NCBI RefSeq assembly: GCF_902713615.1
Contig: NC_052154.1
Span: 81,137,072 to 81,201,071, forward strand
DNA: 64,000 bases
Reading direction: 5' to 3'
Source: Scyliorhinus canicula
Lineage: Eukaryota
How positions within the stretch are numbered: the stretch's first letter is position 1; each line of letters starts with the position of its first letter. The notes beneath the pieces are model-generated. The model made no database searches. It was given only the letters and a program-made list of their open reading frames with translations, and had not been told where the DNA came from. The translations under genes were made by a program, and so were the position numbers. Positions 3,123 through 36,041 of this stretch are shown piece by piece.

Positions 3123-3248
3123 TCAACTTTGCTTTTGTATCCGCAGTTGGGCATACTCTGTGCCCCTTTCGTTAGGTTTGCCTCGGCCTAAGTCAGTCAG
3201 TGCGACACTCGCGAAAATCGGATCGTCACCGGCTTTCCTCTGTTGCGC
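3123..3248 (-). CDS. Gene A terminal exon AQQRKAGDDPIFASVALTDLGRGKPNERGTEYAQLRIQKQS*
   Basis: Acceptor attgatcttccag, phase 0. Contains TEYAQL (ITSM-like, compare SIRPa TEYASI) and the stop TGA at 3125-3123. Confidence 0.85.
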   Translation of the reverse strand, partial: AQQRKAGDDPIFASVALTDLGRGKPNERGTEYAQLRIQKQS

Positions 3249-6200
3249 CTGGAAGATCAATATTTGAAAATATGGTTCATTTGTCGTTTTCCAAGTTCCC
3301 TGGTGAATTGTTGAAAACATTCACCAGAAGGACTCGCAAATAATCTTTAGACAATATGCGGGCAAATTCCACAGAGACATATACGCTGCCTTACCGCATG
3401 AATGTTGATGTTACATGGGAGTTCTTTGTTTATCTGATGTGTCAGTCAGGCCTACCTGAGCATACTAACCTTTTCACGTTTACACCTTGGAGTTTTGCTC
3501 AAATCTAATGTGGCATAATGCAGACATTCAGATGCTGTACCCTGCGTGGTACAAAAAGGAAAACATCGGTTACACGGCGCGTTCATTGAATTCCTCAAGT
3601 GCAGACGGAGGCCATTCGGCCCACAGAGTCTGCACCGATCTTCTAAAAGAGCACATTACTTAGTCCCACTTCCCCTCCCTATTCCCGTAACCCCATGACC
3701 CCACCACACCCGCACATCTTTGGACACTAAGGAACAATCTTTCAGTATGGCTAATCCACCTAATTTGCACATCTTTGGACTGTGGGGGGAAACCGGAGCA
3801 CCCAGATAAACCCCACGCAGACGCGGGGAAACGTGCAAACTCCACGCAGTTTGTCACCCAAGGCCGGAATTGAACCCATGTCCCTTGCGCTGTGAGAAAG
3901 CAGTGCTAAGCACTATCCCAGCGTGCTGCCCATTGTGCTCGGTATGCTCACCAGTTTACAGTCATGCTGATCAAACATTGAACAGATTTATTTGGGTTCG
4001 AGCTGAATTAAGCAAACATTTATATAAGTGCAGTGGCCACAATACCAAATATTAAAACCTGCAAATGCTCACTCGACGTGATTGCTGCAGGGCTCATTAC
4101 GTAAAATCGAATTTCAAAGGATAAATTAATTTATGAATCGTTATTAACTCGGTAGATTTTCAATGACATTGGTGGTTTTCTTTTCTGAGCATTTATCAAT
4201 GTTCTGCAGAAATGAACGAGGTGGCAAGTAAATTTCCATATCTGATCGGAATATCTGACCGGGACAGAACAAGTACTTTTATTAAATAGACTGAAACTGG
4301 TCTGACATGATTGTAACATTAACTTTCCATTCTATCTATCGTTCCTGATATTTCAACAAACTGTCAATGAATGAATTAACGCACCAACTCCTCGCGCCGG
4401 TCCCCGCTTTTTATATGTTCTTCTTTATCTATAAATAATTGAAATTTAATTATTTATCATATTATGTTGTATTATAAAAAATATATTGAAAAAAAGACAC
4501 ACTTACCTCATTTACATATCGGAGATGACAAAGATATGTGGATGGTAAGAAATAGCCGGAGTATGCCAAAAATGTTTGAAATCCTAACAGTTTGTAACGG
4601 TCAGCAATAGACTACCTTTTGAATTTTCATCCAAAGCCAATGTATTATTTGAGGCGGCGGAAATCGAAGGACATAGAAATACAACGGGGGATATTGCGTG
4701 GCTTAGCACTCCCGAAGAGCAGTATGGCCCACTCATGCTCCCATCATATCCACCTATGTGTGCAACCATTGCTTAGCCACATTCAAACTAATTGCCCCTC
4801 CACTACGACGTGGTTTGCAAAGTGATTCTGTGTTACGATACTCTTCATTTACCATTTGAAACTTATTTTTGAAACCACTGGATTTTTTTCTAGTTTTGTT
4901 ACAGTTATGAAGGCATCTCCGATACCATATAATTACAACAATTCGTACGATCTTAAGACCATAAGACTGTTTTCAACTTTAACTCCCATTCGGCTTCTCT
5001 TTCTCCTGCATTACCCGGAAACTGACATTCACCTTGAGATTTTTTACTAAAATCAAGGGTCCACAGTAGATCCTACCAACATTCTTCTGCAATCGGTTCC
5101 GCCACCCAATCACGATCAGAAACGCCACCAAGGCGAATCCAGCCACTGCACATCCTGGAATCCAATAGGAAACTGACATCGGGACAATATCTGCAAGATT
5201 AATTTTAACATGATGTCATAGCGGATGTTGAATAAATGTGAATAAAGTGGTCCGTTTTTCATGATCAACAAACTGTTCTTGAAATTATTTATTTATTAAC
5301 GTACAGTTTGAGAAAGTCGAGATACTTTACACAAGCAGTTAATCGATGTCCGCACACAATCTGGACTGCAGCAGTCGGTTAGAAATCCCCTTCAATTCTC
5401 TCAACCGTGGTTATCAAAGCCAGGATCCCATTGGAGGTGGAAAGGTATCACGAGCATACTACCCTCCCAAACAGCCTAGCAAGGCACTCAATTCAAGTGC
5501 AGTTCGGGATGCGGGAAGAATATTGGCCTTCTCATGGATCTGCAGTTCCCATGACGGAACATGAACAGCCTTCTGCATTAAACTGGTACAGTTTAAATGA
5601 CATTCATCAGGAAGACTCTTATTAACCCACCATGGACGGTGAGTCACAGAAATTGGCCAGAGGATTGATTTCAGAACTCTGCATTGGAAGTAGACAAACG
5701 AGGGGCAGTATCGCGAGTTACATTGCGAGATGTCCGTGCACAATCAACTTGCCGACAGCTCCTGCTACGGTCTGAATGCAGGAAGAGTAGGCAATAGTAA
5801 ATAATAAAACGCTTAACATAGAAAATAGAAACTGGCCGGCACGGTAGCACAGTGGTTAGCACAGTTGCTTCACAGCTACAGGGTCCCAGGTTCGATTCCC
5901 AGGTCATTGTGTGGAGTATGGACGTTCGCCCTGTGTCTGCGTGGGTTTCCTCCGCGTGCTCGGGAGTCCTCCCACAGTCCAAAGATGTGCAGGTTGGGAG
6001 GATTGCCCATGTTAAATTGCCCCTTCGTATCGAAAAAAAGGGGTGGGGTTACGGGATAGCTGAGGTGTCGGCTCAGGTATCCGACCTCAGCCGACACCTC
6101 AGCCTACCCTGAGGTAGGGTTCTCTTTCCACTCTTCTGCAGTGTAGATTCTAATATTATATGATTAATAACATTCGGGTGAGGTCACGTTATACTGGGAA

Positions 6201-8329
6201 ATGTGAACGGGTGTTTAATATATTTAAGTGCTGCACAAATAAATTCCAAAGCAAACATTGTTTGAGGGAGAATGCTTATGTATCTGGCGATATAACCTAG
6301 TTTTGCAACACATCGGGTTAAATTCCCTTGTAAAGATACGACTTTGATGTTCGCATTGATAATTCCCACGATGTTTATGAGGCCAATTTCTGTATTATTA
6401 ATATGTATGAACATATAACTCTATTCAAAAGTAGCTGGTGCTCCGTACCTTTAGAAACAGTGTAGGTGGCCACAGCTGGAGTCTTGAGGGACATATGCGA
6501 TACCAAACAAGTATAGTTGTTGACTGTCCTGACAGTCGTCGACTCAATCAAAGTGCTCGAAACTTCATACAGTCCATCTCTGTTCTTCACTTTAATGGTG
6601 TTTATTCCGAGTGCAGTTTCCCTGCCATTTTTATACCAAGTGAGAGTGAAATTTGCTGGGTAAAACGCAGCCGTTTCACAGACTAGCATCAAGGACGAAG
6701 ACGATTTCAATCCAGATGTCCTGGAGTGAAGCTTCAATGGTGTTGGGGCCACTGCGGGACACACAATTAACATAGTTGAGCTACTGTGCACTATTGGAAT
6801 AAATCAAATATATTTCTGATTGACTTTCGTTCTGTTTTCCTACATTAGGACCAGTGGCAATTCTAATCTCCTGTCTTTTTACTATTATGCACACCATCTA
6901 ATCACAATTCACCTTTCTCTCTCATAAAGACCGCTTTCGGTTAACTTTGCCATGGTGTCAAACCCAAAGTTCTCGAATTACTTGGAAGGCAAGGCGGAAT
7001 GATTTGCTAACCAATGTTTGGTTTACATCGCCTGTAAACCAAGGCGATATAAATCAAACATCATTCGGCTTTGGTGGGCAAATCGGCTTACTGATTCCTC
7101 GATGTGCTTGATGTGTGGTGATAGTGAAAAAATAGGCATTTTCTTGACGATAAATGGAACGATTCATCGTCTCTGAACAACTCAGAACCCGAGCATGACC
7201 AATGGAAACAAATTATATTCAGTTGAAACTCTCGAGGTTTCATCAACATTGCCTCTCTGTAGTGTCGTATTTGTTGCGAAGTTCGAGACGTGACAAGCAT
7301 GCGTGTTTCAAACTCCAGTCCATTGAGTGAATCAACTGCTTTATAGTTAGCAGCACATTAGCATCCAAATCAATACCGTATCATCATGTGAGATTTCATT
7401 TCAGAAATATTAATCTCCAAGTGATTAATGCCGACAGACAGAATATCAAAACTGGACGAACAACCATGTACATTTTGGGAGAGGCCCGTTAATATGGACA
7501 ATTTTCCGTCAGCTATATTTTAGGAATTCATTACAAATTTCTGCTATTAGTTAATTTATTTGTACTCATAATTAGAAGCTAGTCGATTTATATTGCGAAG
7601 ATATGCAAACTTCACCGTGTCACATCGCATGCATAATTAGTATTTCGATACAGAGCACCCAGATATACATTAACTTAACTTAAATATGTTCATAGACACG
7701 TTTTACTGACAGAAGTGATGCACAGCCACGATTGTTGTGTTTGATATATTTATAGCGGTCTCGTTCTCCTGTGCTCCAAACTTACCATGCACAATTAGAT
7801 GCGATCCGGTTCCATTTCTTCCATGTAGTCCATAACGGATCACAGAGCAGTGATAGATTCCAGCGTCTTCCAATGTCGCGCCCAGCAACTGAAAGAACCC
7901 GCTCACTTGACGTTCATGACCAAACCGTTTTCTCTTGTCTGCGCTTGAACGAAGGTATTCATTCTCGCCATGCTTCCACCATAATATCCGGACCCAGGAT
8001 TGTTCTTTAAAAATGGGGAATATGCAGTAGAAGGTGGCGTTCCCCCCTCTGGATGTAGCCACTTCTTCTGGTGCTTGAGACACACTGAAAGTAACGTGGT
8101 CCGCAGCTGTCAGAAATATAGACAAACACAGGTTAATCGCATGAGCTAAGGCATGAGGATGGACGATCAAAACTTAACCCAGACAAAGGAAATAAGATTA
8201 GCTAAATTATTATGAAAATTACCTAGGAGGAAGTTTATTAATTAAGGTAAGTGGGCAAATAAATAAACTAGTACCTGTGTGACTAACCCCTCGGAGAATG
8301 ATCCATATAAAAACCATACAAGTTGCCAT
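3123..8329 (-). CDS. Gene A: inhibitory-type IgSF receptor, leader-V(J)-C1-TM-cytoplasmic ITIM/ITSM (SIRP-like / NKp30-like V), 7 exons, ~355 aa
   Basis: Exons read on the minus strand: 8329-8275, 8106-7786, 6751-6449, 5190-5077, 4583-4507, 3541-3470, 3248-3123. All introns are GT-AG and phases match (1,1,1,1,0,0). Total 1068 nt is an open frame ending in TGA. The 4583-4507 exon is the least certain. Confidence 0.85.
3470..3541 (-). CDS. Gene A exon 6, cytoplasmic ITIM exon GTASECLHYATLDLSKTPRCKREK
   Basis: Strong acceptor ttttcctttttgtaccacgcag, donor AAG|gttagt, 72 nt, phase 0-0. LHYATL fits the ITIM consensus (I/V/L/S)xYxx(L/V). Confidence 0.85.
3590..3931 (-). mobile_element. tRNA-derived V-SINE/HE1-like SINE in a gene A intron
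   Basis: tRNA-like head (gggcagcacg...ggttcaattcc), central core ctccggtttcc..ccacagtccaaagatgtgc, CR1-like tail. Confidence 0.85.
4507..4583 (-). CDS. Gene A exon 5, cytoplasmic (G)FQTFLAYSGYFLPSTYLCHLRYVNE
   Basis: Perfect donor GAG|gtaagt. The 77-nt length gives the phase 1->0 change needed to join the TM and ITIM exons. The acceptor (ctgttag) has a weak pyrimidine tract. Confidence 0.55.
5077..5190 (-). CDS. Gene A exon 4, transmembrane DIVPMSVSYWIPGCAVAGFALVAFLIVIGWRNRLQKNV
   Basis: Acceptor atcttgcag, donor G|gtagga, 114 nt. An uncharged hydrophobic stretch is followed by a basic stop-transfer segment (RNRLQK). Confidence 0.88.
5834..6153 (+). mobile_element. V-SINE/HE1-like SINE in a gene A intron, with an internal inverted duplication
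   Basis: Same head, core and tail. Hairpin at 6059-6103. Confidence 0.85.
6449..6751 (-). CDS. Gene A exon 3, C1-set Ig domain
   Basis: Acceptor gtcccgcag, donor G|gtacgg, 303 nt, phase 1-1. Motifs LVCETAAFYPANFTLTW, DGLYEVSSTL and YTCLVSH are typical of C1-set. Confidence 0.93.
7786..8106 (-). CDS. Gene A exon 2, V-set Ig domain with joined J-like G strand
   Basis: Acceptor tttctgacag, donor G|gtaag, 321 nt, phase 1-1. Motifs: B-strand Cys (NATFYC), C-strand WWK, DAGIYHC, and G strand NGTGSHLIV. Confidence 0.93.
8275..8329 (-). CDS. Gene A exon 1, signal peptide MATCMVFIWIILRGVSHT(A)
   Basis: ATG at 8329, hydrophobic core, 55 nt ending in phase-1 donor G|gtac, 168 bp upstream of the V exon. 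Confidence 0.75.
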
Positions 8330-9559
8330 TTTTATCAATGGACCGAATCGTTGAGTCTCTGCGAGCGTGTAACGGTGAAAAATAGTTTGCGGTTAGTTTT
8401 CTATCAGCGGCGTCACAATGACATCTGACATCCGGCAACCGGGTGCTCAGAAATCAAGATTCGTTTTGTGAAGTGGGATTTTCTCATTTATGCAATTATT
8501 TTACATCTGGAATCACTTGTTTTACGGACATCGAAAGGTAAGGGAAATATAGATTTTCTAACTCTGAATTTACTCACATCGCCGAGTCGGTTATGTTTCT
8601 TGGCAGCTAACGGCATTCTAACCAGGATGGAGAACAGCGGCGAAGCGCCGACCAATCGTGGCTTGCTCGAATATGTCAAAGACTATATAGGGGTTGAGAA
8701 CGGCCATATTCACAAATATTGTAATACTGGGCAGTGTATTTATTGTCTGTCTGATTTGGGAAACCGCACGGAGAGACTCAAAGGGGATCTGTGAGCTGAC
8801 AACAGCTTGGCTGTCACCATGCACACGTGGAGGTTGGAGACGTGGTGCCAGTTTGGAAGGTGAGCGCAGTGAGTTAATTGAAAGGAGGGGTGACATTGGT
8901 TTCCAATGAGGCCGTGTCTTCGGAAAAACCCGCGCTTTATATCACAACTCTCTGATAAAAATTACCGGCTGCTTATTCCGCATTGGGCCACGCAGAACGA
9001 GCTGCGAATGGGGTAAGGCATGTTTAGAGGGTGCTTGGCGGAAGAAGAAAATACGTTTCTGAGGAACAGAGTATCTGGGATGTGGTCGGCTGTGCAAGAG
9101 AGTTTTGTTCCCGTAGACAAGTGTTAAAGTCTTTAAAATTATCTGTCACCAGACGAGAAGGATTTCACTTGCAGGTTGTGAGTTGCCGGGTGGGTGGTGG
9201 GCAGATCGGTGGGCGGGGGGGGGGGGGGGGGGGTGCGCTAGGAGGTAGCGGTGGATGGCGAAGGTGAGAGTTGACGCTGGATAGGGAAGCAAATATTTGA
9301 TTATCGTTACGCTCCACATGAGCGGGATCGGTGGCACACAGCCATAGCGCCATGGACCCGGGTTTGATTCCAATCTTGGGTGATTGCATGTGTTTCCACC
9401 GGGTGCTCCGGTTTCGTACCACAGTCCAAATACCTGCAGGTTAGGTGGCGTTGCGGGGTTAAGGTGGGGCGAGTGCCTGGGTAAGGTGCTCTTTCGGAGG
9501 GTTGGTGCAGACTGTAGGGATTCTATGGATTCTGTTGATACCAATACATAAACAGTGAA

Positions 9560-11830
9560 GACTAATTGTTGCAAAGGTACCAAAACAACTAAAGTCATTT
9601 ATCTGAATTCGCATAGCATTCGTAAAGAGGTTAAGGAAAGCATCACACTCATGGAAAAGTCACATAACCACACAAAGATAAATGGCAAGTCAGTTGATTG
9701 GTCAGGACATAACGAATGGCAAAGATTTACTAAAAGGTTAATCAGGAGGAATTAATTAGAATAAAAGAGGATGTTACCTAGAAATGTAAAGGAAAACGAC
9801 ATTAATAACTTCTACAGGTATTTAAAAAGGACAATTAAGTCAATTCAGGGTTGGTCCTCTGGAGGGTGACATTGGGGAGTTAATAGTAGATAATCAGTTA
9901 ATAGCGGGTGAAATAAACAAATATTTTACTTCTGCCTTCATTATAGAGCGCACAAAAACAATCCAGTAAGAAGTCTTACAACACCAGGTTAAAGTCCAAC
10001 AGCTCGTGTTTGAAACAAACCTGTTGGACTTTAACCTGGTGTTGTAAGACTTCTTACTGTGCTCACCCCAGTCCAACGCCGGCATCTCCACATCAAAACA
10101 ATCCAGAAATAGCAGTAAATCACCAGGTGGAAGCGGAGAGGAATTTGGTGAAATTAGAATCACTAAGGAAGCATTACTGAACAAACTGACTGAGCAGCAG
10201 GTGGACAAGTCTCCGGTTCCATGTGGACTTCATCTCAGGGACTTAAAACAGTGGTTACTGGGGTAGTAAAGGTGTTCCTGTTAATTTTCCAAAATTCGCA
10301 AGATTCTACAAAAGTTGCATCAGGCTGGAATGTAGCAAATATAGTCTCAATATTCAAAAGGGGAGAGTGGCAGAAAACAGGAAACTATAGGACAGTCAAC
10401 TTTTAAAAAAAATAATCGTTATTGTCACAAGTAGACATTCAATAACACTGCAATGAAGTTACTGTGACACGCCCCGATTTCCACATTCCGCGCCTGTTCG
10501 GTACAGAGCAGGAGAATTCAGAATGTCCAAATTACCAAACACCACATCTTTCGGGACTTCTGGGAGGAAACCGGAGCCCCCAGAGGAAACCCACGCAGAG
10601 AACGTGCAGACTCCACACATACAGTGACCCAAGCCAGGAATCGAACCTGGGACCCTGGAGCTATGAAGCAATAGTGCTACCCACTGCTACCATGCTGACC
10701 TATCGTAGGGCCACCTGTCGTAGAGAAGGTGTTAGAATAGACCATTAAGGAATTTATTGATGAGCATTTTTAAAAAATCAATGTAATTGTGAAGAGCAAG
10801 CCTAGTTTCAGGAAAATCAGCTTTGTTAACCAATTTATTGGAATTTTGAAGGAGTAAAATGTGCTGTGGAGAAGGGGCAGGGGATTTTAGATGAACTGTA
10901 CTTTTTCATTTTCATTTTGATCAACGGACCTTTGCAGAAAATAAAAGCCCATCATGTAGAAAATAAAAGCCCATCATGTTCATATATCTATGAACATGAA
11001 TATATTATTTAATGGATGGCAGAAAACAGCGCGTATGGATTAACTGGCCTTTTTCTGATTGGCAGAATGTGGTGACTGGAGTCTCGTAGGGGTCTGTTCT
11101 GAACCACAACTTTCTACAATTTACGTCAATGGTATTGATGATGGAAGTGAAGGCATGGTAGCTGACTTTCAAGATGGAGTGACGATAGGTGGGAAAGTAT
11201 GATGTGAAGAAGACATGAAGAGCTAGCAAATGGATGTAGCTAGATTGAATGGTGGGGCAAATATCTGGCAAATGGGGCACAATATGCAAATTGCGATGTT
11301 TTTCACTTTGGCAAGGGGAGTAAAAAAGGAGGTGTTACTTAAGCGGAGAACAACTGCAGAAGTCCGAGTATTCAAGTACAGCAAATAATTAAGATGGCTA
11401 ATGGAATGATTGTCTTCGTTATGAGATGAATTGAACGTAAAATTACAGATGCCATGATACAGTTACACGGAGCATTGGCGAGGCCACATCTCGAATTCTG
11501 CGTGCAGTTTTGGCATCTGTATATATATAGAAGGTTTTAAATGCGTTGAAGGCGGTTCAAACGGTTTACTAGATGAATACATTTGTCTTAAAGAGGAAAA
11601 AGTAGGCGGATTAGTCTTGCTTCCACTAGATCTTAGACGAGTGAGAGATTACTTGTTTGAAGGATGAAAGATGTTGGACGTGACTGAGAAAGTGGACTAC
11701 TATAAAATTAAAACAGTGCCCTTTTAGAACAGAGATCTCAGACAGTTATGCGTCACAGTAACCCTCTGCCTCAGAGAGCGTTGGAGACGGGGTCGTTGGT
11801 TACCTTCAAGGCAGAAAACGATGGATTATT
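9560..11830 (+). mobile_element. CR1 LINE remnant with nested Penelope fragment and SINE
   Basis: YLNSHSIRK, GWNVANIVSIFKRGEWQKTGNYRTV and a typical CR1 3' region. Confidence 0.8.
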
Positions 11831-12329
11831 GTTAGGCATGTTAATAATGGTTATTGGGGGTGGAGGGATTTTTGTCGTTATTCTTTCCTAGGATGTGGTC
11901 GCAGCTGGCAGGGCCAGCATTAATTGCCCTAGCCAAATTCACTAGAAACTGAATGGCTGGCTATAACAGTTCAGAAGGCGTTTACGAAGCATCCACGTTT
12001 CTGTGGTTCTGGAGTTGCTTGCACGGCAGACTGGTTAAACATGGTAGATATCATTCCCTAAAGGACAATAGTGGACCAGATGTTTTTTTTTATGACAATC
12101 GCCAATGGTTTCATGGTCATGACACTTAATCCCAGATTTGTTATCACTGAATTCAAATTTCACCATCTGCCGTGGTGGGCTTTGAATTCTTGTGCACAAA
12201 ACAGTACGTTGTGTCTCTGAATTACTAGTCCACTGACAACACCACTGGGCCCTCGCCTGTAAAACACAAGCCGAACAGTTATGACCTTGTTGAATGGCGG
12301 AGAAGGCCAGAGGAGACGAATAACCTACT

Positions 12330-17225: not shown

Positions 17226-17424
17226 GTGCAAGACAATGAAATGTATATTCGGGAAATTAAACAAGACGTTAAACAAGAAACTGAGGGAAATGAAGAAACA
17301 AATCAACCAGGATTAGATTTTGTGAAAATACTGGACGAGTATGCAAAAATGGTTAACCAAGAAAAGGTTAATGATTCAGGCCAGAATCAGAATTGAACTC
17401 TTTGCAGTATTTATGTAAATTATG

Positions 17425-17810: not shown

Positions 17811-17829
17811 TCTTTATGGAAATTGTTTG

Positions 17830-26402: not shown

Positions 26403-26431
26403 TTTTTGTTCTTTGGAGGACATTCATCTGA

Positions 26432-26600
26432 CATCTGGATTCTGCGGTCTCCAAACTGTCTGTTTCTCGGCGGTACGGTGGTTCACTGGCTGCGGGATTC
26501 TCTGCTCCCCCCGTCTTGTCAGTGGGAAAGCCACCCCATGCCGCCGGGAAACCTGCGGGCGAGGATGTGCTGCTGGCGGGACCAGAGAATCGCAATCATT
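26432..26600. mobile_element. Harbinger-type MITE fragment
   Basis: gcgggattctctgctccc...ccagagaatcgc resembles the TIR seen at 55615. Confidence 0.4.
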
Positions 26601-29565
26601 ATTTATTTTGCATCCCTTTTTGTATGTTTGCCTTCTGTGTGTATGGAGGATGGGGCGAGTTAAATGGAAGGGTTGTTAGTAATGAGACTGCAGATAACCA
26701 GTTGTATTTGTTGCTTATTTAGTTACCGTTACTTCAATAAGAAAAGATAATTGTGTTTAAATTTACAACGTTGGAGCCTGGAGTTATTGGAGACCGAAGA
26801 CATCGGGTAGTTTAAAAATTAAGAGTTAATTTTAACTGTATTGCGATTCCGAGGCTGAAATTGACCGCGCACTAGCCAGTGTGTCGTAATAATGTTGTAA
26901 TATTAGCAAGAGAACTTGCACAATCCTCTACTATATTTATCTCACTCAGCCTGAAGTGGCGGTGCGGCAAGGTTTCGTAATCTGATTAAAGGACTGCGCC
27001 GCGGTGGCAGGTGTGTTTAAATCTTTTCTCTTTAGGTTTCTAGTCGGGAAGATACGGTTGCCTTTCTGCAAGTGCTAATATAAAATCAACCGGTAAAACG
27101 TACTGTCAAAAATTTGTAGCATATGATAAACCATGTACTGGCCATGCATAAATGTGCCGTGAGCCAAGTGATATTAGTCACAAAAAAACAATGGGTGAAT
27201 AGACAGTGGTGCGTTCTGGTGCAAGGAAGGACTTTCGCCAGAGAAAACATCTTGCCAATGAGATACAGTAGCGCAATTGACAGAACACAAACCTTTTGTT
27301 TTCTGAAGGACGAAATTCTGTCGGTGCGATTGTGTAATGTTTGTGTCACTGAACGCAATCTAACGAATGCTACTCGAGATCGCAGGAGAATAATTTGAGA
27401 AGTTGAAATAAGTTTAAAAATAAAACGTAATGCAACAAGAAGCACGATTTTCTAAACAAAAATCCGGTAAATTACTCTATGGATGTGACTAAACGTGAAA
27501 ATAGGTGCTCAGTAAACTTGCCCATGACGGTGTTGGAATGTTGCAAAACTCAACTGTTGTGATGATAGTCGATGCGTTTTATTAACCAACTTTCCCTTCG
27601 GGAAACATACCTGGCTTCTGGACTATACGTGACCCACAGGGAGTCTAATACGATTGCTCTAGCATGTCCTCTGAAAAGGTTGAGTGAATAATTTATTTGA
27701 ACGAAGCTTCAATGAGAAGATCCGGTAGCGCCGCCAACTCATGACAAAGCGACGAGCCCCAAATCATCAACAAAATGAGAATAAAAACATACTCAATAAG
27801 CTTCACTGATGATGTACGTTTAAACTAGTTCGCCTGCTTCAAAAATGAAGAAATCGATTTGAAACAATGTCGCTTACATTGTGCTCTGGGAAGTGAATCA
27901 GATGAGTTTTCGCTGGCACCATTGGGCCGCTAATCCGACTCGCCCTTAGCGAAATGACCATTTGTCATCTGCATTGGGCAAAATCATACAGTTAATTATT
28001 TCTGTAGCGTACTTCACCTTCACACTCATTAGAGACCAGACGAAGAATCTTGGACTTACGAACAAGGCCGTTATTACAATTATAACGGGCCTCCTCGCAC
28101 AACAAACAGCTCTGCTTCCCGCGTTGTTCAATTATAATTCACATTAAGATACAGAAAATTAGCATATATCAACCAGTTTTTACTATTTATCTATGTAACT
28201 ATCGATTAGATTTACACCATTCATGAATATGGGAATAATCAACCAATCGTATCAATGATTCGCAAGCTTAATTAAACCATTAAATCAATAAAAAGGCACG
28301 TAAATGTTGTCTTCCAGTTATTTATCACCGGATCCCCGTTATTAAGAATGTGAGGGCAGCACAGTGGCGCAGTGGGTTAGCCCTGCAGTCTCATGGCGCC
28401 GAGGTCCCAGGTTCGATCTCGGCTCTGGGTCACTGTCCCTGTGGAGTTTGCACATTCTCCCCTTGTTTGTGTGGGTTTCGCCCCCACAACCAAAAAGATC
28501 TGTAGGCTAAGTGGATTGGCCACGCTAAATTTCCCTATAATTGGAAAAAATTCTAAATTTAAAAAAAAGAATGTGGCTATCGTTCACCTACCTGTCTGCC
28601 TCTTCTGACTTCTCGTCCGTTTCCCAAGATAAAACTGATCTGCTGCAATAACGATTCTGGGTATTTGTGTCCTTCCAAACAGATAAAGTCGATCTTATCT
28701 TTCCTGGCCCCATCTCCAGCGAGTTGTGACCTTGGGCATGCTTCCTCTTGCTATCTTCAGCTAAACCGCTTGTGAGTGCACTACAGATCGACAGAGAAGA
28801 GTTTTAACCGTGCAGTCAGTTTTTTTAAAACTACAATTATTCGGATATAATCAGTTCCCCCTCATCGCATCCATTAAGTCGAGACAATGAAACTGGAATT
28901 GACCCACAGGGTTCGTGCAAACATGCTTATAATTTGTAGCAGACGTCATGAGTGCAAAGTAGACACAGACGGGAAGTTAAATTTACGTCATGCAATCTTA
29001 TCAATATTAGTTGACTTAATTGCATTGTACAATTGGATGCATGATGCAGTACAGTATCTACCTTGTGGCCTAGATTGGGTTACACTCTTTTGTTGGCCAA
29101 GAAAGAGCAGAATTACGAACAGGATATTTTCAAGTTAACCTGAAGAATATGGGAGGACTAACGGGGCAAGGGAACACACAATGAACGATAGTACACTAGT
29201 AAGTTCAGAGGTCCAGCTGGACATTGGAGGGTGCATATACATAGAGCTATGCAGAGACCATGATAGGAAGGATTGGAGTTGTTGGGTTACGGGTATAGGG
29301 TGGATACGTAGGTTTGTGTAGGGTGATCATTGCTCGGCACAACATCGAGGGCCGAAGGGCCTGTTCTGTGCTGTACTGTTCTATGTTCTATAAGGTGGTT
29401 AAGAAAGCATATAGGATACTTGCTTTTATTAGACTAAGCGTAGAATATAAGAACAGGGAGGTTATGATGGAGGTATATAAACGGCCACTCAGGCCACAGC
29501 TGGAGTATTCTGTGCAGTTCTTGTAGCTACACTATCGGAAGGATGTGATTGCACGAGAGGGGGTG

Positions 29566-29840
29566 TGTGGCCATCTGAGATGGCCACCTGCAAAGGACCA
29601 TGGGAATTATGGCCATCCCAGGACTCAGAAAAATACAGATATTTTGTGTCTTTGAAACGCAGGCAGCTAGACCTAATCGCAACCTCCGCTCGTTTGCATT
29701 CTAATGGCTCATTTCTCCAGAACAATAACCCTTGTGTATAAATAAACCATCTTTGAACTTGAACTGACTAACTGGTTGTGTGGGCATTTGTCCGATATAC
29801 GGGAAAGCCTTGTGGTTCCGCTCTGGTCTCGAGAACGACA
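29566..29840. mobile_element. Short solo-LTR-like element truncating a CR1 fragment
   Basis: TG...CA ends, internal TATAAATAAA, and an abrupt end of CR1 homology at 29565. Confidence 0.35.
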
Positions 29841-30016
29841 GATTGGCAGAATGATTAATCCTAATTGCTATTCCTGTGACTTTTGGGAGAATTATTGCTG
29901 TGTGGAGGCTGTTTGAAATCAGGATAGCACTGCGCGTGGAACGGGCAGGACGCTATATTTACTCACTTTCGCTGCCTATACTCCTGAATGAAGGCCAGTC
30001 TCTCAGATGAGGTGCT

Positions 30017-30028
30017 GGGGAATTTCCC
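30017..30028 (+). promoter_or_regulatory. NF-kB consensus site GGGGAATTTCCC upstream of gene B
   Basis: Perfect match to GGGRNWYYCC about 610 bp before the gene B ATG. Function is not shown by the sequence alone. Confidence 0.4.
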
Positions 30029-30077
30029 GCTCCTGGGGCCTGAATCGATATTATCAGCCACAATACGTAACTTTAAT

Positions 30078-30492
30078 CATGTGGTATCCCGTGTCATGGT
30101 CACGCGTTCAATTTCTTCATCTATGAGATCAATTCCTGACCAAACCATTCAATGCATCATTCTGATTTGCTGCAAGTGGTCAAGAAACGTTTTTAAAATC
30201 ATAAGGTTCCACCTCCTTATTTAGATTCTGCGTTGCAAATTAGATGCGATATATCTCAAATCCGATCGTTGCTGCTTCTTAATTGTTTCTGTATTTTACT
30301 TATCTTCGTTATTTTTTCTCTGACGGATGCAGTTTATCGTAGTTCTTCTTTTTCTCGCCGCAAAAGTAACTTCAAACAAAATGGAGCAATTCCCTAAACT
30401 TATGACTGTAGCCAAGGGTGATAATGTTTCCATATTCAGCACATTTTGCATATATGAATATGCTCCTGAAGTTTCTTGGTGGCGACGCGGCG
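30078..30492 (+). pseudogene. Decayed tandem duplicate of the gene B promoter, intron and 5' half of the V exon
   Basis: 30357-30490 encodes AAKVTSNKMEQFPKLMTVAKGDNVSIFSTFCIYEYAPEVSWWRRGA, nearly the same as the gene B V N-terminus. The acceptor AG is changed to CG and the B-strand Cys to Ser. 30078-30165 resembles 30513-30598. Confidence 0.85.
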
Positions 30493-30634
30493 CGTGGATG
30501 CGCTCTTTCAGTCATGTGACATCTCATGTCATGGTCCCCCGTTTCATATACTCAGAGACCTATTTCCTGCCTAAACCATTCAGAATACATCCTCCTGTGC
30601 AGCACCTACAATTGTTTTCCTTTCCATTTACAAC

Positions 30635-30689
30635 ATGTCGATCAGAGTTACAGCTCAGTACATGGCTCTTCTGGGTCTGATGTGGCCAG
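30635..30689 (+). CDS. Gene B exon 1, signal peptide MSIRVTAQYMALLGLMWP(A)
   Basis: 55 nt (same length as the gene A leader), phase-1 donor CCAG|gtatgt, 211 bp upstream of the V exon. Confidence 0.75.
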
Positions 30690-33600
30690 GTATGTTGAGT
30701 TGTTTAATGTTGCCGTTTTAGAATGGCTTAAATGGTATTTTAAGTATACAACTGTATTGTTGTAAAAAAAAATAGTTGCTGCGCTTCTTCAATTCCACTG
30801 CTGGTGTTTCTTCATTGTTTTTGAATTTTCCTCCATTTAGTTATTTTCCTTCTCTGACGTATGCAGTTGTTATCCACGTTCTTTTCTACTTATTTCCTAG
30901 CCGCCAAAGTAACTTCGAACAAAGTGGAACAGTTCCCTAAACTCCTGACGGTAGCCAGGGGTAACAATGTTTCCATGTTCTGCACGTTTTCCATATATGA
31001 AGATGCTCCTGAAGTTTCTTGGTGGAAACGCGGCGCTGAATCTTTGCTGGAACCAGACAACAGGAAGAGATTTAGTCCAAAGAAGGGACGGAGTACATTA
31101 GAAATTCTAAATGCGAGTATTACAGACTCCGGAATGTATTACTGTAAAGTCAAACATCAACAGGTCAATATTGGGGATGGAAGTGGCTCCCAGCTCACTG
31201 TGTTTGGTAAGTGTAATTGTTCCAGGGAAAGACCGCTTTCCAACTGTGTGTGATTTATGTAATTTTAGCTGTTATTACTAGTTGAAAATCTGGCGATAAC
31301 TGATTCGTTTTACACTGCTGTGGGTTTTCATAGAATCATAGAATTTACAGTGCTGATGAGGCCATTCTGCCCATCGAGTCTGCACTTGGAAAGAGCAACC
31401 TACCCAAGCCCACGCCTTCACCCTTTTCCAGTAACCCCACCTAAACTTTTGGACACAGTGGGAAAATTTCGCACAACCAATCCGCCTAACCTGCACATCT
31501 TTGGTCTGTGGGAGGAAACAGGAGCACTTGGAGGAAACCCACGGATACACGGGAAGAACGTACAGACTCCACACAGACAGTCACCCGAGGCTGGAATTGA
31601 ACCTGGCATCCTGGAGCTGTGAACCAGAAGTGCTAACCACTGTGCCACCTTGCCGCACTTTTTTTTCCATTGGCCTCCATGTTTAACGACCGTTAATTCC
31701 CCATCGCCCAAGATCAATTTTATTCATTCCTCGTCCACGTTACATTCGGAAGTGCTTTTCATCCAACGAGTGTTTTTGATGCACCCAGAATTGTCACTGA
31801 ACAAGATATTGAAAGAAAGATGCTGTTAAAATCTTAGTTTGAGATTAATTAATGGGATGGTATGGTCACTTTTATTGTCAACAAAAGTACCCTAATACTT
31901 CACACAGCATTTGTATTCATTGCTTTAAATTGCCATCTATTACTTTTTATGCTTAATTGTCCAAACGTTGACTTCGGTGAGACTCTTAGGCATGGGTATC
32001 AAAATAATTGAGTTAATCAGCCAAATTAAGTAGAGGTCTAATCAATCGGAATACCCGAATAAGGTAGTGGAACGGAATGACCCACTACAGTTCCTGTGCT
32101 CCCATTGAATGCAGTACACGTGTGTACATTGATTACCTTGTTTACGATACCGAACCCTCCAATGAGGCTTCTTACAGTCCATGTTAGAGGTGTTGATCTT
32201 GCCTTCAAGTCTGGTTTTCAACAAAAGTCCGAGAGCGTGCAAGATAGTAAAGATGTTAATTGCCCATGTTGAGGACCTCTGTCGTTGGCCAATTCGACCT
32301 TCATACACTCGAAACCAATAATTGCAGACGGGCTGTCACCGAACGTTCCTGTAAATGGCTGGGTTCGATCTTGTTAATCATGTTTTCCATTTCCATTCCC
32401 CAAACTTCAATGGAATTTAGAAGAAGGCAGCAGACAGCAGTACCCTCATTCGTTTGCATGGACAATCTACAGCATTACCTATCACAAGTGGATTGGCCAT
32501 GCTAAATTGCCTCTTAATGTTCGAAGATCTGCGGGTTAGGTGGGTTGGGCATGATCTAAGCTTACCATCATGGGAATGGGACGGGGTAGTGGGCCTCGCT
32601 AGAGTGCTCGTTCGGAGGGTCAGTGCAGAGTCGTTGGACCGAATGTCCTAATTTTCCACTGGAGAGATTATATGCTGGTGATACTTAATGAGATCCAAGG
32701 CAAACAAATATCCTTAAATTGATCATTTGTTATTGGAACAGAGCCGAATAAATAGACACATAATGAAAATAATGTTAAGGATAGCGTTCGTAATAAATTA
32801 ACAAACTACTTCAACTTATTAAAGGGCATTTGCTTCCAGATATGTTGCGTCAGGTGATCTAATAATATTAGGTAGATAGGCAACTGATAGAAATATCATC
32901 GCTTCAGGCAATACGAATTCAACACATCAAATGGAGGAGAGCAGAAAACATTTAAAATATACATTCGAAGTGAGATATGCAATTACATTTACTTCATCTG
33001 AATGGGTGCAGTTATCGACAAAGCCATGACAATTGCCAATATTACACTTTCATGACAAAACTAGTATTCCAACCCTCAATTCTTCTTCTGGAGAAAGCAC
33101 CTGAGGTGAAAACTGCACGATGTGGAAACTCCAGCACAGACACTGAGATGTTGTCCTCAAAATTAGTGCAGAATTATAATCTGCACATTTTAAAACAAGG
33201 CTGGAGTCTATATTGACATTATTATAATATAATAAACTTCATTGTCACAAGTAGGCTTACATTAACACTGCAATGAAGTTACTGTGAAAAAACCCTCGTC
33301 GCCACATTCTGGTGCCTGTTCGGGTACACAGGGAGAATTCAGAATGTCCAATTCACCTAACAGCACAGCTTTCGGGACCTGTGAGAGGAAACCCACGCAG
33401 ACACGGGGAGAACGTGCAGACTCCGCACAGACAGTGACCCAAGCCGGGAATTGAAGCACAGACCCTGGCGCTGTGAAGCAACTGTGTTCATCACTTCGGT
33501 GACACACGGGTGTTCACAGTCAAAATAAAATATGGTTGGTATTACTTGAAATATTCGAAAATCGAATTGATTTGAAATAGGCACAGAAAATTGTATACGA

Positions 33601-36041
33601 TATCATGAACAATGTTAATTACGGGAAAGACGATTGTGTTGCACTGTTATTTGCATACATTTAGAGCTGAATTGTCTTCTGAGACATTGCTGCTAACCGC
33701 AAACCTGCTCCAGGACCTGCTGTTCCCATTCAGAGCAGTGACCCGTCTCTCCCTGCATGCTATCAATACTTGGAGATTCATCCTCCCTGTATATCGTTTG
33801 TAATACATCCGAATACTTTGCCGTGCGCCGCTTAACAATTTTGATATAAATATAAACTCAAGAGTTTAGAAGTCATAAAATGGATAACTGTTGTCACTGC
33901 AGAAGTGTAACATCAAAGTTGCGGCATACAAATGTCAATGCGTTCCTTTAAATTAAAAACAGCATTCTATTTTCCTGTTCAAGTTCCTCCAACGCCATTG
34001 AAAATGCTTCCGATTGAAGAGAATTCAGCGACTTCTCTGAAGTTCGAATGCAAAACGGCTGCCTTTTACCCGGAATATTTCAGAATCTCCTGGCAAAGAG
34101 ATGGTGTGGAAATTCTGACCGGAATAGAAACTGTGAAAAACGAGACAGCGGAGGGTCTTTTTGAGGTTTCCAGCTCTTTGGAAGATGCAAGGCCTGTCCT
34201 GAATGGAGTAGTTTATACCTGTCTGGTATCCCATATCTCCCTTAAGGTGCCCGCCAGTGTCAGCTACACCGTCATTCAAGGTAAGATTGGAAACAGTTAC
34301 AGGATTAAGCGCCGGAAAGGCTGCAACCTTAGTTACTTGTTAGACATGCATCTGATCAGCTATTAAAACTCGAATATACAGGGTAAATGTGGAGCGTATT
34401 TACCCACAATGTCACATCAATGGGAATGAATTAAAATAATCAAGGTAGTTTGTCGCTGAAGGAGGGAGAATTTCTCCCTGAAAAGATCTGAAACTGGAGG
34501 TTGATGTGCGAACGGCACAAAAACTTAAAGCTGTTTCTTAGTCAAATTCTTGCCAAATGAAATTAACTTAAAATGGATCAGTTTTAGTGGAGACACTTTT
34601 ATTTAGGACAGTTCCTGTGTGGAACTTCAGCTAATATTTTTGAAGGGAATTTTCTCTATGATGCATATTCCTTTGTGTATTCATAACTTATTTCTAGCTT
34701 ATGCAAACATAAACATTTCAGAATACCCTCTTTTACCTGGATTTACTTTATTCGCATATGACCTTCCCTCTTTCAGTCGTTTGCAAATTGCGGAGTTGAG
34801 GAATTGGTTCTAAATCTATTTTGGTGGCAATTGTGGTTGCAGACCTCTTACTCCAATAAACAAAGTTAATTGAAGTTATCAGCACTAAGGGTGTTGAATA
34901 ACGGAGGAAATTACAGTGTTAGTACCGAGAATTTGGCACTTGATCCGTATGTTACTGAGAACGTGTGTGGCTAGATGGGAGCCGATCAAAGCTACCAGAT
35001 CTGAAAATCAAGAATCCTAAAGCATATGTGGCATCCTGATGAAGTTAGTAGTGCGGGCAAAAAAACAGGCTGATTGTCAGAGATAGCTGAGCTGGTGTTG
35101 CGTGGCGGACTTGTCGTGTCCCATGTTGTTTTAAAAAAGGGCCCAAAAAGGCGCTTCTTTTTTTTGTACCCGGTCAAATATATTTCAAAGGCTATTTGTT
35201 TAGGAGTTGTTTTTCTCTATTTCTCATAAAATTAACAGAGAGAACAGAGCAGAATCCTACCCCAAAATGGACATCATTGTCCTATATTAATTATACAACC
35301 GTTATGTGGAGTTAAAAAAAGAAGCTAACGATCGACAAGATGGCTTAGCCACCAAAACAGGCTGCCTCGGAAGGTGGAATGCGCCACGGTACACGCTCAC
35401 GTGGTGCTCATTTTGCCGAGTATATTTTGAGGTTATCATCGTACGGTAATTCAACTTTAGAAATGTAGAATCGGTCCCAAATTTAGAGTAACAATTTTGT
35501 GGATCCCTTTCCGTGTCTAAAAGCTAATACTATTTGTTTCCATTCGGCAATACTTATATGAGCTAATTGATGTGTATCTTTTAATCCCGTATTGTAGATC
35601 ACAGTTTCCGCAACGTGGTGATTACACGGCTTGTTCTGGGTTTTTTGGTCATTCTTGGATTGCTGGGTATAATTGTGGACCATGTAACATATGTTCGACT
35701 GAAGGTGAGAGGACGTAATTTTTTATTCAATAAACTACATTCAAAGTCCATACACAGGTAGCATTGGTAGGCTAGAAATGCGAAATGTGATTCTGCCCGA
35801 CGTTGTTGACGTAATTTAAGATTAATGGTCCTAAACCTTGCTGTCAAATAACAGACAACATAAAAGATCGACACTTTTAACACACTTTTCCTGTTAAGTG
35901 CTGCTGAAAAGTTACAGGCATGAAACGTTAACCGTTCCCTTTCCACACATGTAGCCTGAGCAGCCAAGTATTTTCAGCATGTTCAGTTTTTATTTCGAAT
36001 TTTATTAATTTCCACATTTATTTCAGTTTCGTGCAGAATAA
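30635..36041 (+). CDS. Gene B: activating-type IgSF receptor, leader-V(J)-C1-TM(Arg)-short tail, ~259 aa
   Basis: Exons 30635-30689, 30901-31206, 33984-34280, 35598-35704, plus a probable terminal exon 36027-36041. All introns are GT-AG with matching phases (1,1,1,0). The terminal exon is uncertain. Confidence 0.83.
30901..31206 (+). CDS. Gene B exon 2, V-set Ig domain with joined J-like G strand
   Basis: Acceptor tatttcctag, donor G|gtaag, 306 nt. Motifs: NVSMFC, SWWKRG, DSGMYYC, and G strand GDGSGSQLTV. Confidence 0.93.
31330..31655 (-). mobile_element. V-SINE/HE1-like SINE in gene B intron 2
   Basis: Same head and core, with a (tctatgat)n tail. Confidence 0.8.
33984..34280 (+). CDS. Gene B exon 3, C1-set Ig domain
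   Basis: Acceptor ttttcctgttcaag, donor G|gtaag, 297 nt. Motifs FECKTAAFYPEYFRISW, EGLFEVSSSL and YTCLVSH. About 47% identical to the gene A C1 by manual alignment. Confidence 0.93.
35598..35704 (+). CDS. Gene B exon 4, transmembrane DHSFRNVVITRLVLGFLVILGLLGIIVDHVTYVRLK with intramembrane Arg
   Basis: Acceptor cccgtattgtag, donor AAG|gtgaga, 107 nt, phase 1->0. Hydrophobic span contains Arg (CGG at 35627-35629). Confidence 0.85.
36027..36041 (+). CDS. Gene B probable terminal exon FRAE*
   Basis: Acceptor ccacatttatttcag, phase 0, stop TAA, with AATAAA at 36049-36054. An alternative acceptor near 36587 would give VNYFRVGTV*. Confidence 0.4.
   Translation, partial: FRAE

Follow-up and report, generated by a model that had tools for sequence, protein, structure and literature searches.

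The 64 kb window, the whole stretch of Scyliorhinus canicula DNA analysed here, probably holds two members of a Chondrichthyes-wide family of germline-joined VJ-C1 type I membrane receptors, one of inhibitory type (gene A) and one of activating type (gene B). The two genes are intact and lie head-to-head on opposite strands, with the gene A ATG at 8329 (minus strand) and the gene B ATG at 30635 (plus strand), a spacing of 22.3 kb. The first-pass annotation had described two intact opposite-strand paralogues with ATGs about 22 kb apart and a common leader (55 nt)/V/C1/TM exon plan, and both points held. Each gene opens with a 55-nt leader exon that ends in phase 1 and continues with V, C1 and TM exons, with phase-1 introns and canonical GT..AG sites. 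Pfam called V-set and C1-set domains in both genes, and the C1-set model outscored the butyrophilin and CD80-type C-set models.

A tblastn search of the window returned genes A and B and one partial V copy, and no further genes were seen in the 64 kb; the pairing of A and B exceeds chance. When the DNA of the two genes was compared by blastn, only the C1 exons aligned (67.5% identity). The partial copy adjoins the gene B leader exon on its upstream side:

30259..30505, plus strand: degenerate partial duplicate of the end of the gene B intron and the first ~155 nt of its V exon (DNA alignment, tblastn)

Its DNA identity to gene B is high across about 245 nt, with none past that, and the tblastn match was 68% over 57 aa.

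Gene A (8329..3123, minus strand) encodes a leader, a VJ-type V domain, a C1 domain and an uncharged TM, followed by a tail in which LHYATL and TEYAQL occur. Its exons are:

8275..8329, minus strand: exon 1, 55-nt split leader, beginning MATCMVF (sequence, GT donor, ATG at 8329, ends in phase 1)
7786..8106, minus strand: exon 2, VJ-type V domain with the J-like NGTGSHLIV in the same exon (Pfam V-set, RNA)
6449..6751, minus strand: exon 3, C1-set domain (Pfam C1-set E 1.2e-11, RNA)
5077..5190, minus strand: exon 4, stalk, uncharged TM (YWIPGCAVAGFALVAFLIVIGW) and juxtamembrane stretch (X1 RNA contig)
4385..4428, minus strand: exon 5, 44-nt cytoplasmic exon (RNA joints, frame check)
3470..3541, minus strand: exon 6, ITIM exon with LHYATL, Tyr288 (RNA joints, motif search)
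3123..3248, minus strand: exon 7, ITSM-like TEYAQL, Tyr335, and stop (joint 3470|3248, motif search)

RNA contigs confirmed four of the six splice joints of gene A: those that connect V to C1, TM to exon 5, exon 5 to the ITIM exon, and the ITIM exon to the last one. The first of these, 7786|6751, was present in RNA set X1, where the contig spliced to the V exon spans 6492-6751 of C1. The V exon itself was covered by contigs at 7820-8106 and 7881-8146 with 95.5-96.6% identity to the reference, which indicates that they derive from an allele or a paralogue. A 356-nt contig from X1 matched exon 4 with no more than two mismatches and carries the joint 5077|4428; this joint and 4385|3541 were both found in X1 and X2, as was 3470|3248 on the other side of the ITIM exon, and contigs continue from exon 7 into the 3' UTR. 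Exon 1 had no RNA-contig coverage in the sets examined; the N-terminus aligns with the RefSeq orthologues P0183, P0184 and P0185.

The 44-nt exon at 4428-4385 was missing from the first-pass annotation and was revealed solely by the RNA contigs. It is required, because the reading frame is kept only when it is included. A phase-1 acceptor within the ITIM exon was rejected once the RNA had shown this exon. The uncharged TM and the two tail motifs predicted for gene A were confirmed, with Tyr288 and Tyr335 as their tyrosines, and so was the presence of the ITIM exons in transcripts: both tyrosine-motif exons are transcribed and spliced. Orthologue tails carry up to four xxYAxL motifs, of which gene A retains two.

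When spliced, the gene B CDS (30635-30689 + 30901-31206 + 33984-34280 + 35598-35704 + 38075-38140) encodes exactly the 276 residues of the Scyliorhinus canicula RefSeq protein P0217, and its span of 7506 bp agrees with the annotated gene:

30635..30689, plus strand: exon 1, 55-nt split leader, beginning MSIRVTAQYMALLGLMWP (candidate scan; identical to the P0217 N-terminus)
30901..31206, plus strand: exon 2, VJ-type V domain with the J-like GDGSGSQLTVF (Pfam V-set/I-set, RNA)
33984..34280, plus strand: exon 3, C1-set domain (Pfam C1-set, RNA contigs joined to V)
35598..35704, plus strand: exon 4, TM with Arg230, then D-H at its cytosolic end, formed by D247 and H248, and VTYVRL (RefSeq P0217)
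38075..38140, plus strand: exon 5, last coding exon, SGKDRLIISALVVHNYASSTR and then stop (P0217 identity, paralogue homology)

The last exon is homologous to that of a paralogue in L001, and it carries the feature about 2.1 kb past the end at 36041 given earlier. That end did not survive comparison with P0217, whose identity with the spliced CDS places the true end at 38140. The exon previously proposed there (36027..36041, plus strand; FRAE, stop) lies outside P0217 and had zero RNA coverage. The charged residue predicted for the TM is present as Arg230, but the description of gene B as having almost no tail was mistaken: the tail is 30 aa, against the ~17 aa of the earlier model. Two other start codons, at 30328 and 30861, were considered and rejected. 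The ATG at 30328 has no subsequent phase-1 donor, and the RefSeq model agrees with the 55-nt leader at 30635-30689. The AlphaFold model of the protein has two Ig domains and a TM helix, with a mean pLDDT of 89.4.

The V and C1 exons of gene B had an RNA depth of 29-95 in X2, and the V|C1 joint was seen. An X2 contig matched the V exon at 306/307 nt and was spliced to C1, contig 26 of the same set carried 58 extra nt upstream of the V exon, and two expressed C1 variants in X2 were 3-6% off the reference. None of four RNA contig sets gave any depth over the Arg-TM exon; a gap in contig coverage by itself proves nothing. RNA thus bears out the splicing of the V-C1 and tail joints of gene A and of V-C1 in gene B, but not that of the gene B Arg-TM exon, which was unseen; use of this exon is predicted from the RefSeq model and from conservation.

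The proposal that both are non-rearranging VJ-C1-TM genes proved correct. In A and B alike the V exon itself contains the J-like G-x-G-x-x-L-x-V motif, and no RSS-like heptamer or nonamer was found in 2500-9500 or 29500-38500. Rearranging Ig and TCR genes, in contrast, have separate V and J segments flanked by RSS, and A and B have neither.

Both genes belong to a family that we define by a score of at least 200 bits to an ectodomain HMM, WW[KR] after strand C, and G-x-G-x-x-L-x-V followed by P-x-P-L at the V/C1 junction; A and B have both the score and the motifs. We count at least 69 representatives from 18 species of cartilaginous fish, with sharks, rays and chimaeras among them. On sequence criteria it is well bounded: 69 proteins reach 200 bits or more and the next tier scores at most 69 bits. 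Every named member is chondrichthyan, as are all the strong family matches; in Scyliorhinus canicula the RefSeq members include P0030, P0217 and P0219. ITIM-like motifs were found in the tails of 30 of the 62 TM-bearing representatives. The TM module R-x(15-19)-[DEN]-H is kept in 13 of the 62, from chimaera (Callorhinchus) to sharks, and requires at least nine state changes on the ectodomain tree.

RefSeq has given these proteins at least eight conflicting automatic names, among them SIRP-alpha-like, B7H6-like, tapasin-like, MHC-II-like, CD276 and Ig-lambda. The commonest is 'tyrosine-protein phosphatase non-receptor type substrate 1-like', and gene B and several other members are called 'natural cytotoxicity triggering receptor 3 ligand 1-like' (NCR3LG1-like). 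The suggestion that this is an undescribed family therefore needs qualifying, as RefSeq models already exist in 18 species, but we found no paper characterising it in the literature on shark SIRP-like genes, PRARP, shark NCR3 and B7H6 evolution.

Genes A and B do not form a matched couple. They are 34% identical in V and 47% in C1, and fall in separate starred clades of the ectodomain tree, that of gene B including rays. Strict paired receptors have near-identical ligand-binding domains, which A and B do not share. The pair proposed by the first-pass annotation therefore stands in that signalling features of both the inhibitory and the activating kind are present, but not as a match: A and B belong to different old subfamilies. 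The nearest relative of gene B is P0219, which lies on the same chromosome outside the window and is 93% identical in the ectodomain (V 95/102, C1 92/99), while its TM/tail backbone differs. In the P0219 model an Arg replaces the family Cys in the TM, and the 27-aa tail has no ITIM. The neighbour of P0219 is an OGFOD1-like gene, the sole flanking non-Ig gene seen beside a family member.

If A and B are receptors of the kind we propose, ligand binding to gene A would lead to phosphorylation of Tyr288 (LHYATL) and Tyr335 (TEYAQL), which would recruit SH2 phosphatases of the SHP-1/SHP-2 type. In gene B, Arg230 lies five residues deep in the TM, counted from the outer side, and would pair with an aspartate in the TM of an ITAM adaptor, for which the FcR-gamma/CD3-zeta and DAP12 types are candidates. 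We infer that both proteins are expressed on immune cells and bind ligands there. As A and B are distant paralogues of different subfamilies, these ligands probably differ, and it seems unlikely that the two act as decoy and counter-receptor for a single ligand. TM and tail modules have been swapped among ectodomain lineages many times.

By sequence and fold the family is about equidistant from Ig/TCR chains, SIRP, the B7/butyrophilins and UrIg2. In a phmmer search of solved structures with the gene B ectodomain, UrIg2 scored 58.6 bits, Ig lambda 43.8, SIRP-alpha 42.2, B7-H3 41.7 and B7-H6 38.1. Ectodomain scores for Ig light chains, SIRP-alpha, B7-H3, B7-H6 and TAPBPL were roughly equal; that for UrIg2, the top immune-type V-C1 match among solved structures, was somewhat higher. 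The C1 profiles scored 84.8 and 97.4 bits against UrIg2 when summed over its C domains; the best per-domain score was that of human C-lambda (43.9 bits), and there is therefore no specific affinity to UrIg2. The V-profile search of solved structures was swamped by multi-Ig proteins (titin, Robo) and was uninformative. The top Foldseek matches in Swiss-Prot were BTNL9, B7-H6 (ranks 2 and 6; E 6e-14, 21% identity), PD-L1 and CD276, with SIRP-alpha at rank 10 (rmsd 3.8) and all E-values within one order of magnitude. Among solved structures the top fold matches were Ig light chains.

Other systems resemble the family in part. PRARP genes of bony vertebrates, attributed to Fu et al. 2019, are reportedly VJ(-C1) genes that occur linked, do not rearrange and carry ITIM-like motifs in the cytoplasmic region. 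Teleost NITRs and mammalian KIR and LILR form clusters mixing ITIM and charged-TM forms with repeated exchange of signalling modules, but NITRs are built of V and I-type domains and KIR/LILR of C2/I-type domains, none of them C1-set, and they are not sequence relatives of the family. UrIg and UrIg2, found only in cartilaginous fish, share the single-exon VJ and split leader followed by C1-type domains. They differ in that UrIg, with its three C1 domains, is secreted and UrIg2 has at least nine C1 domains (PMC12227049), whereas genes A and B combine one C1 domain with a TM and with signalling parts of ITIM or Arg-TM type.

Other readings were weighed. A and B share with Ig and TCR a VJ-type V followed by a C1-set domain and a split leader (55-nt, phase 1). 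The family might be a surviving germline VJ-C1 lineage of the antigen-receptor ancestor kind, whose chains would pair through C1 and V, as homo- or heterodimers, like those of TCR and Ig. Head-to-head neighbours such as A and B would then be predicted co-regulated partner chains of one receptor, with an inhibitory tail and an adaptor-coupling TM. We regard this as highly improbable. With scores about equal across Ig, SIRP-alpha, B7-H3, B7-H6 and TAPBPL, the idea that the family stands close to the pre-RAG ancestor gained no specific support. Membrane proteins with a V-C1 ectodomain of the B7/butyrophilin kind act as ligands in most cases, which counts against reading the family as receptors, and it may instead be the cartilaginous-fish B7H6 (NCR3LG1) lineage, serving mainly as ligands for expanded shark NKp30/NCR3 receptors. 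B7H6 and the B7/butyrophilins do share a V and C ectodomain, a single-pass TM and a phase-1 exon plan with the family, B7-H6 ranks high in Foldseek, and NKp30 and B7H6 gene numbers are said to co-vary from sharks to mammals (a report attributed to Flajnik et al. 2012). Nurse shark has eight NCR3 genes (PMC12227049). However, B7-H6 scored below both Ig lambda and SIRP-alpha in phmmer, identity to this group is just 15-23%, and the canonical J-like G strand, multi-ITIM tails and charged-TM forms with the conserved Arg-TM module set the family apart, the last two being features of receptors. The NCR3LG1-like name given to gene B and several members weighs little, since others are named after SIRP, tapasin, CD276, MHC-II or Ig-lambda, and we consider this reading unlikely. 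True SIRP orthologues, with A as SIRP-alpha-like and B as SIRP-beta-like and one C1 in place of two, would account for the commonest RefSeq name and for the alignment of SIRP-alpha across the entire V-C1 region. SIRPs are already known as VJ-C1 paired receptors with ITIM forms, short-tailed basic-TM forms and several xxYAxL-type tail motifs, and the orthologue tails of the family have a four-tyrosine xxYAxL layout that we take to recall the SIRP-alpha tail. Mammalian SIRP-alpha, -beta and -gamma are V-C1-C1, though, and A and B carry a single C1 exon between V and TM; the activating forms of the family use an Arg near the outer leaflet with D-H, as opposed to the central Lys of SIRP-beta; and similarity to SIRP is no stronger than to Ig light chains, B7 proteins such as B7-H3, or TAPBPL. 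Against the family HMM, sarcopterygian multi-C1 'SIRP-like' proteins are level with IgNAR at just 58-63 bits, and a search from a Pogona 'SIRP-alpha-like' protein returned only a conserved multi-C1 family of reptiles and amphibians. OGFOD1, as an OGFOD1-like gene the one non-Ig neighbour found, is to our knowledge not in the human SIRP region at 20p13. SIRP orthology thus seems quite unlikely.

A separate doubt concerns the activating role of gene B. Its TM exon might be skipped to give a secreted decoy, or its tyrosine motif and tail might serve endocytosis or inhibition. The silence of 35598-35704 in four RNA runs, although V and C1 were well covered in X2, is compatible with skipping. The membrane-adjacent VTYVRL matches the ITIM pattern, which counts against a purely activating reading; it is conserved next to the membrane as VRYVQL in the paralogue P0005, and the Chiloscyllium member P0056 joins the Arg-TM module to a C-terminal VGYDAL. 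The exon is nevertheless present in the RefSeq model, such coverage holes are no proof, and the R...[DEN]-H module is conserved from chimaera to shark in several ectodomain clades. As the chimaera and shark lineages split about 400 million years ago, conservation of this depth argues for a selected function within the membrane, and we think it very unlikely that gene B is not an activating form. A family of germline-joined VJ-C1 receptors with inhibitory-type and activating-type members is the reading we prefer.

No living lineage with Ig, TCR and MHC is older than the cartilaginous fish, and non-rearranging VJ-C1 genes are central to the debate over the origin of antigen receptors. On present evidence the picture of RAG-transposon invasion is unchanged. 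What the family offers is a large clustered set of VJ-C1 genes, common to sharks, rays and chimaeras, in which ITIM forms and conserved Arg-TM forms follow the logic of the SIRP, KIR, LILR and NITR families, but with a V-C1 ectodomain like that of antigen receptors. A proper definition of the family would tidy the annotation and provide a further outgroup when the V and C1 domains of Ig, TCR, SIRP, B7H6 and UrIg are placed in phylogenies. We know of almost no NK or myeloid receptors in cartilaginous fish, and this family would supply candidates.

Six-frame reading found open V-like and C1-like exons on both strands of the window, and we built spliced models of the two head-to-head genes from sequence using canonical GT..AG sites. 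The structures proposed by the first-pass annotation proved correct for both genes, except that RNA contigs revealed a missed 44-nt exon in gene A and the RefSeq protein P0217 showed the 3' end of gene B to be wrong.

Exons of gene A and gene B
8329-8275, minus strand: gene A leader, 55 nt, phase 1
8106-7786, minus strand: gene A V exon
6751-6449, minus strand: gene A C1 exon
5190-5077, minus strand: gene A transmembrane (TM) exon, TM uncharged
4428-4385, minus strand: gene A 44-nt exon, revealed by RNA contigs
3541-3470, minus strand: gene A ITIM exon, LHYATL, Tyr288
3248-3123, minus strand: gene A last exon, TEYAQL, Tyr335
30635-30689, plus strand: gene B leader, 55 nt, from a search for an ATG followed by 3n+1 nt and a GT
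30901-31206, plus strand: gene B V exon
33984-34280, plus strand: gene B C1 exon
35598-35704, plus strand: gene B TM exon, Arg230
38075-38140, plus strand: gene B last coding exon, from homology to the paralogue exon at locus L001 and identity with P0217

The components of an inhibitory receptor are present in gene A, and they are transcribed. The spliced model gives a product of 344 aa with an uncharged TM and two tyrosine motifs, LHYATL (Tyr288) and TEYAQL (Tyr335), encoded at minus-strand positions 3506-3523 and 3144-3161. Contigs from two same-species RNA runs (X1 and X2), aligned over 3000-8500, joined 7786 to 6751, 5077 to 4428, 4385 to 3541 and 3470 to 3248. All four joints have CT..AC ends, and so are GT..AG on the minus strand, confirming that both tyrosine-motif exons are used. 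Without the 44-nt exon the reading frame breaks. No X1 or X2 contig over 3000-8500 covered the leader-V joint; the leader is supported by RefSeq orthologues, whose N-termini it resembles. Compared with orthologues that have four tyrosine units, gene A has kept the first (LHYATL) and last (TEYAQL), lacks the TVYAQ unit and has phenylalanine for tyrosine in the third. Judging by its motif class, this tail would recruit an SHP-type phosphatase.

The tail contig matched the reference almost perfectly, while the V and C1 contigs diverged from it by 3.5-4.5%, suggesting an origin in divergent alleles or close paralogues. Across V and C1 exons of both genes, contigs at 6492-6751, 7820-8146 and 34110-34230 were 3.5-6% off the reference, and X2 held two distinct C1 variants (depths 57 and 37), neither identical to it. 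This divergence points to very polymorphic alleles or to near-identical paralogues with gene conversion. Three other runs, X3-X5, covered exons and introns of 3000-5185 evenly at depth 4-7 with zero mismatches; in this they resemble DNA from the reference individual or strain and not RNA. In an alignment of the family, ITIM-type members have G-C-A-G-G with a cysteine at the outer TM edge (Cys240 in gene A, window position about 5150), which may be an interchain disulfide or palmitoylation site.

The 3' end of gene B was found through a S. canicula paralogue (P0005/P0151), which has the same exon plan at locus L001 and a last exon of four codons far downstream of its TM exon. The counterpart in the window lies at 38075, where an altered stop codon has lengthened the exon to 21 codons. 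A search seeded with P0005 led to the S. canicula RefSeq protein P0217 (276 aa), which the five gene B exons ending with 38075-38140 reproduce exactly when spliced; the terminal exon proposed earlier, 36027-36041, is wrong. Our model also agrees with the annotation in its span of 7506 bp. This assigns the window to S. canicula, on a chromosome record of 198.8 Mb, and shows that gene B already has an annotation, with the automatically given name 'natural cytotoxicity triggering receptor 3 ligand 1-like'.

An X2 contig matched the gene B V exon at 306 of 307 nt, was spliced to the C1 exon and carried 58 extra nt upstream, consistent with the leader. RNA splicing was seen for the tail exons of gene A and between V and C1 in both genes. 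The Arg-TM exon of gene B had zero coverage in all four RNA runs, though X2 depth over C1 was 57-95; such holes prove nothing, and its use is predicted from the RefSeq model and from conservation. As read from sequence, gene B has the parts of an adaptor-coupled receptor, and the signalling types first proposed for the two genes hold. An arginine at the outer leaflet is more like that of FcR-gamma/CD3-zeta-coupled than of DAP12-coupled receptors, and by analogy gene B might couple to an adaptor of the FcR-gamma/CD3-zeta kind.

Three residues past the gene B TM is a tyrosine motif, VTYVRL (35671-35688, plus strand; conserved as VRYVQL in P0005), which fits both the ITIM pattern and YxxPhi. Upstream of the V exon, 30150-30950 (plus strand) had low continuous X2 coverage (depth 2-8), including a 520-nt contig that continues past the left limit at 30150; unspliced RNA or an alternative 5' exon could account for it. 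At 30259-30505 (plus strand), immediately before the real leader exon, the end of the leader-V intron and the first ~155 nt of the V exon are partially duplicated in tandem. The copy has an ATG of its own and, fused in frame, a good signal-peptide-like start (MQFIVVLLFLAAK), and is degenerate after WWRRGA.

Apart from this partial V copy, tblastn with both proteins found no further family exons in the 64-kb window, the remainder of which is mostly SINE and LINE debris. One SINE family occurs in introns of both genes (3583-3931, 5834-6056, 31336-31656, 33385-33495) and elsewhere; its intronic copies draw RNA contig depths of 10^4-10^5 and fill the read tables with spurious joints. Near-identical tandem blocks of ~1.6 kb (50032-51633 and 53282-54927) contain reverse-transcriptase-like ORFs, with additional LINE/RT ORFs at 45.4-48.4 and 61.3-64.0 kb. 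GC-rich parts lie at 56-58 and 60-64 kb.

The proposal that these are non-rearranging VJ-C1 genes was borne out. Pfam V-set and C1-set domains scored above threshold in both genes, each V exon contains a J-like G-x-G-x-x-L-x-V motif immediately 5' of its splice donor, and a sequence scan found no RSS-like heptamer/nonamer pairs in either gene. The J-like motif within the V exon and the lack of RSS indicate that both are germline-joined. Their split leader is typical of antigen-receptor genes (PMC12227049).

A two-exon C1 profile from both genes, searched against 1.8 billion representative proteins, gave 968 matches, 30 of them below 1e-30. With a V-C1 ectodomain HMM, 69 proteins scored at least 200 bits and all others at most 69 bits. 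All named members are chondrichthyan, from 18 species: Callorhinchus milii, Heptranchias perlo, Heterodontus francisci, Chiloscyllium punctatum, C. plagiosum, Stegostoma tigrinum, Scyliorhinus canicula, S. torazame, Mustelus asterias, Carcharodon carcharias, Cetorhinus maximus, Amblyraja radiata, Pristis pectinata, Mobula hypostoma, M. birostris, Hypanus sabinus, Hemitrygon akajei and Narcine bancroftii. Many members of a species lie on one chromosome record. Their automatic names clash (SIRP-alpha-like, SIRP-beta-1-like, tapasin-related-like, CD276 homolog, MHC class II beta-like, NCR3LG1-like, Ig lambda-like, TCR beta-like), as expected of a family with no curated reference. A literature search, which did not reach key shark NCR3/B7H6 papers, found no publication on the family, so prior description is possible; it is annotated yet apparently uncharacterised. 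The novelty first claimed was overstated.

Members share WW[KR] after strand C, N/D-G-T/S-G-S-x-L-x-V closing V and P-P-T-P-L-K opening C1. Long tails with ITIM-like motifs occur in 30 of 62 TM-bearing representatives, commonly as three or four xxYAxL units. Of the same 62, 13 have a TM module with arginine ~5 residues from the outside, 15-19 hydrophobic residues and then [D/E/N]-H at the inner TM end, ranging from Callorhinchus to lamniform, carcharhiniform, orectolobiform and hexanchiform sharks. The module changes state at least nine times on the ectodomain tree, and signalling modules have thus been repeatedly swapped or lost, as in other paired-receptor clusters.

Genes A and B are not a matched inhibitory/activating pair. 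They are only 34% identical in V and 47% in C1. Gene B belongs to a clade of 20 members from sharks and rays (SH-aLRT 100) that mixes ITIM-bearing (Heterodontus, Mobula, Hypanus) and Arg-TM members, and gene A groups separately with orthologues from Heptranchias, Heterodontus, Mustelus and Stegostoma, so the split between them is older than the shark-ray divergence. The closest relative of gene B is P0219, a S. canicula paralogue on the same chromosome outside the window, identical at 92 of 99 C1 and 95 of 102 V positions with a TM/juxtamembrane backbone of the other type. Gene B and P0219 fit the classical definition of paired receptors better than genes A and B do, but in the P0219 model arginine replaces the family-conserved TM cysteine and the protein ends before any ITIM. 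Genes A and B are neighbours within one mixed family. An OGFOD1-like gene (2OG-Fe(II) oxygenase and Ofd1 C-terminal domains) lies 2.4 kb downstream of the P0219 gene on the opposite strand, a possible synteny anchor for the cluster edge.

The ectodomain of gene B was also compared with all solved structures by phmmer.

Phmmer scores of the gene B ectodomain against solved structures
UrIg2: 58.6 bits
Ig lambda chains: about 44 bits
SIRP-alpha: 42.2 bits
B7-H3: 41.7 bits
B7-H6: 38.1 bits
SIRP-gamma: 38.0 bits

The best single-domain match of a 13-sequence C1 profile was the human lambda constant domain (43.9 bits); the UrIg2 and SIRP-alpha totals with this profile come from several C domains. 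The V domain alone gave only weak matches, to PD-L1, VH, TCR beta and amphioxus IgVJ-C2. With the AlphaFold model of gene B (pLDDT 89.4), Foldseek placed BTNL9, B7-H6, TAPBPL, TCR beta, Ig lambda/kappa, PD-L1, SIRP-alpha and CD276 within one E-value order at 15-24% identity, the best solved structures being Ig light chains. These comparable scores suggest a separate V-C1 lineage that lies, by sequence and predicted fold, at much the same distance from SIRPs, TAPBPL, B7/butyrophilins and antigen-receptor chains, and its closeness to the pre-RAG ancestor of antigen receptors had been overstated. Genes A and B have one C1 domain and a TM, whereas UrIg has three C1 domains and is secreted, and UrIg2 has nine or more C1 domains (PMC12227049). 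PRARP genes are cited as MHC-linked VJ genes in PMC10751288. A highly conserved reptile/amphibian family (P0123, P0209-P0216; about 610-640 aa, V and several C1 domains; 64-85% identity between lizard and turtle, 44% to frogs), automatically named SIRP-alpha-like, IgG heavy chain-like or CD276-like, may be a counterpart, in tetrapods, of the multi-C1 VJ genes of sharks.

The IgSF receptor family to which the locus belongs is clustered and has both inhibitory and activating forms, a type of system that is already known.
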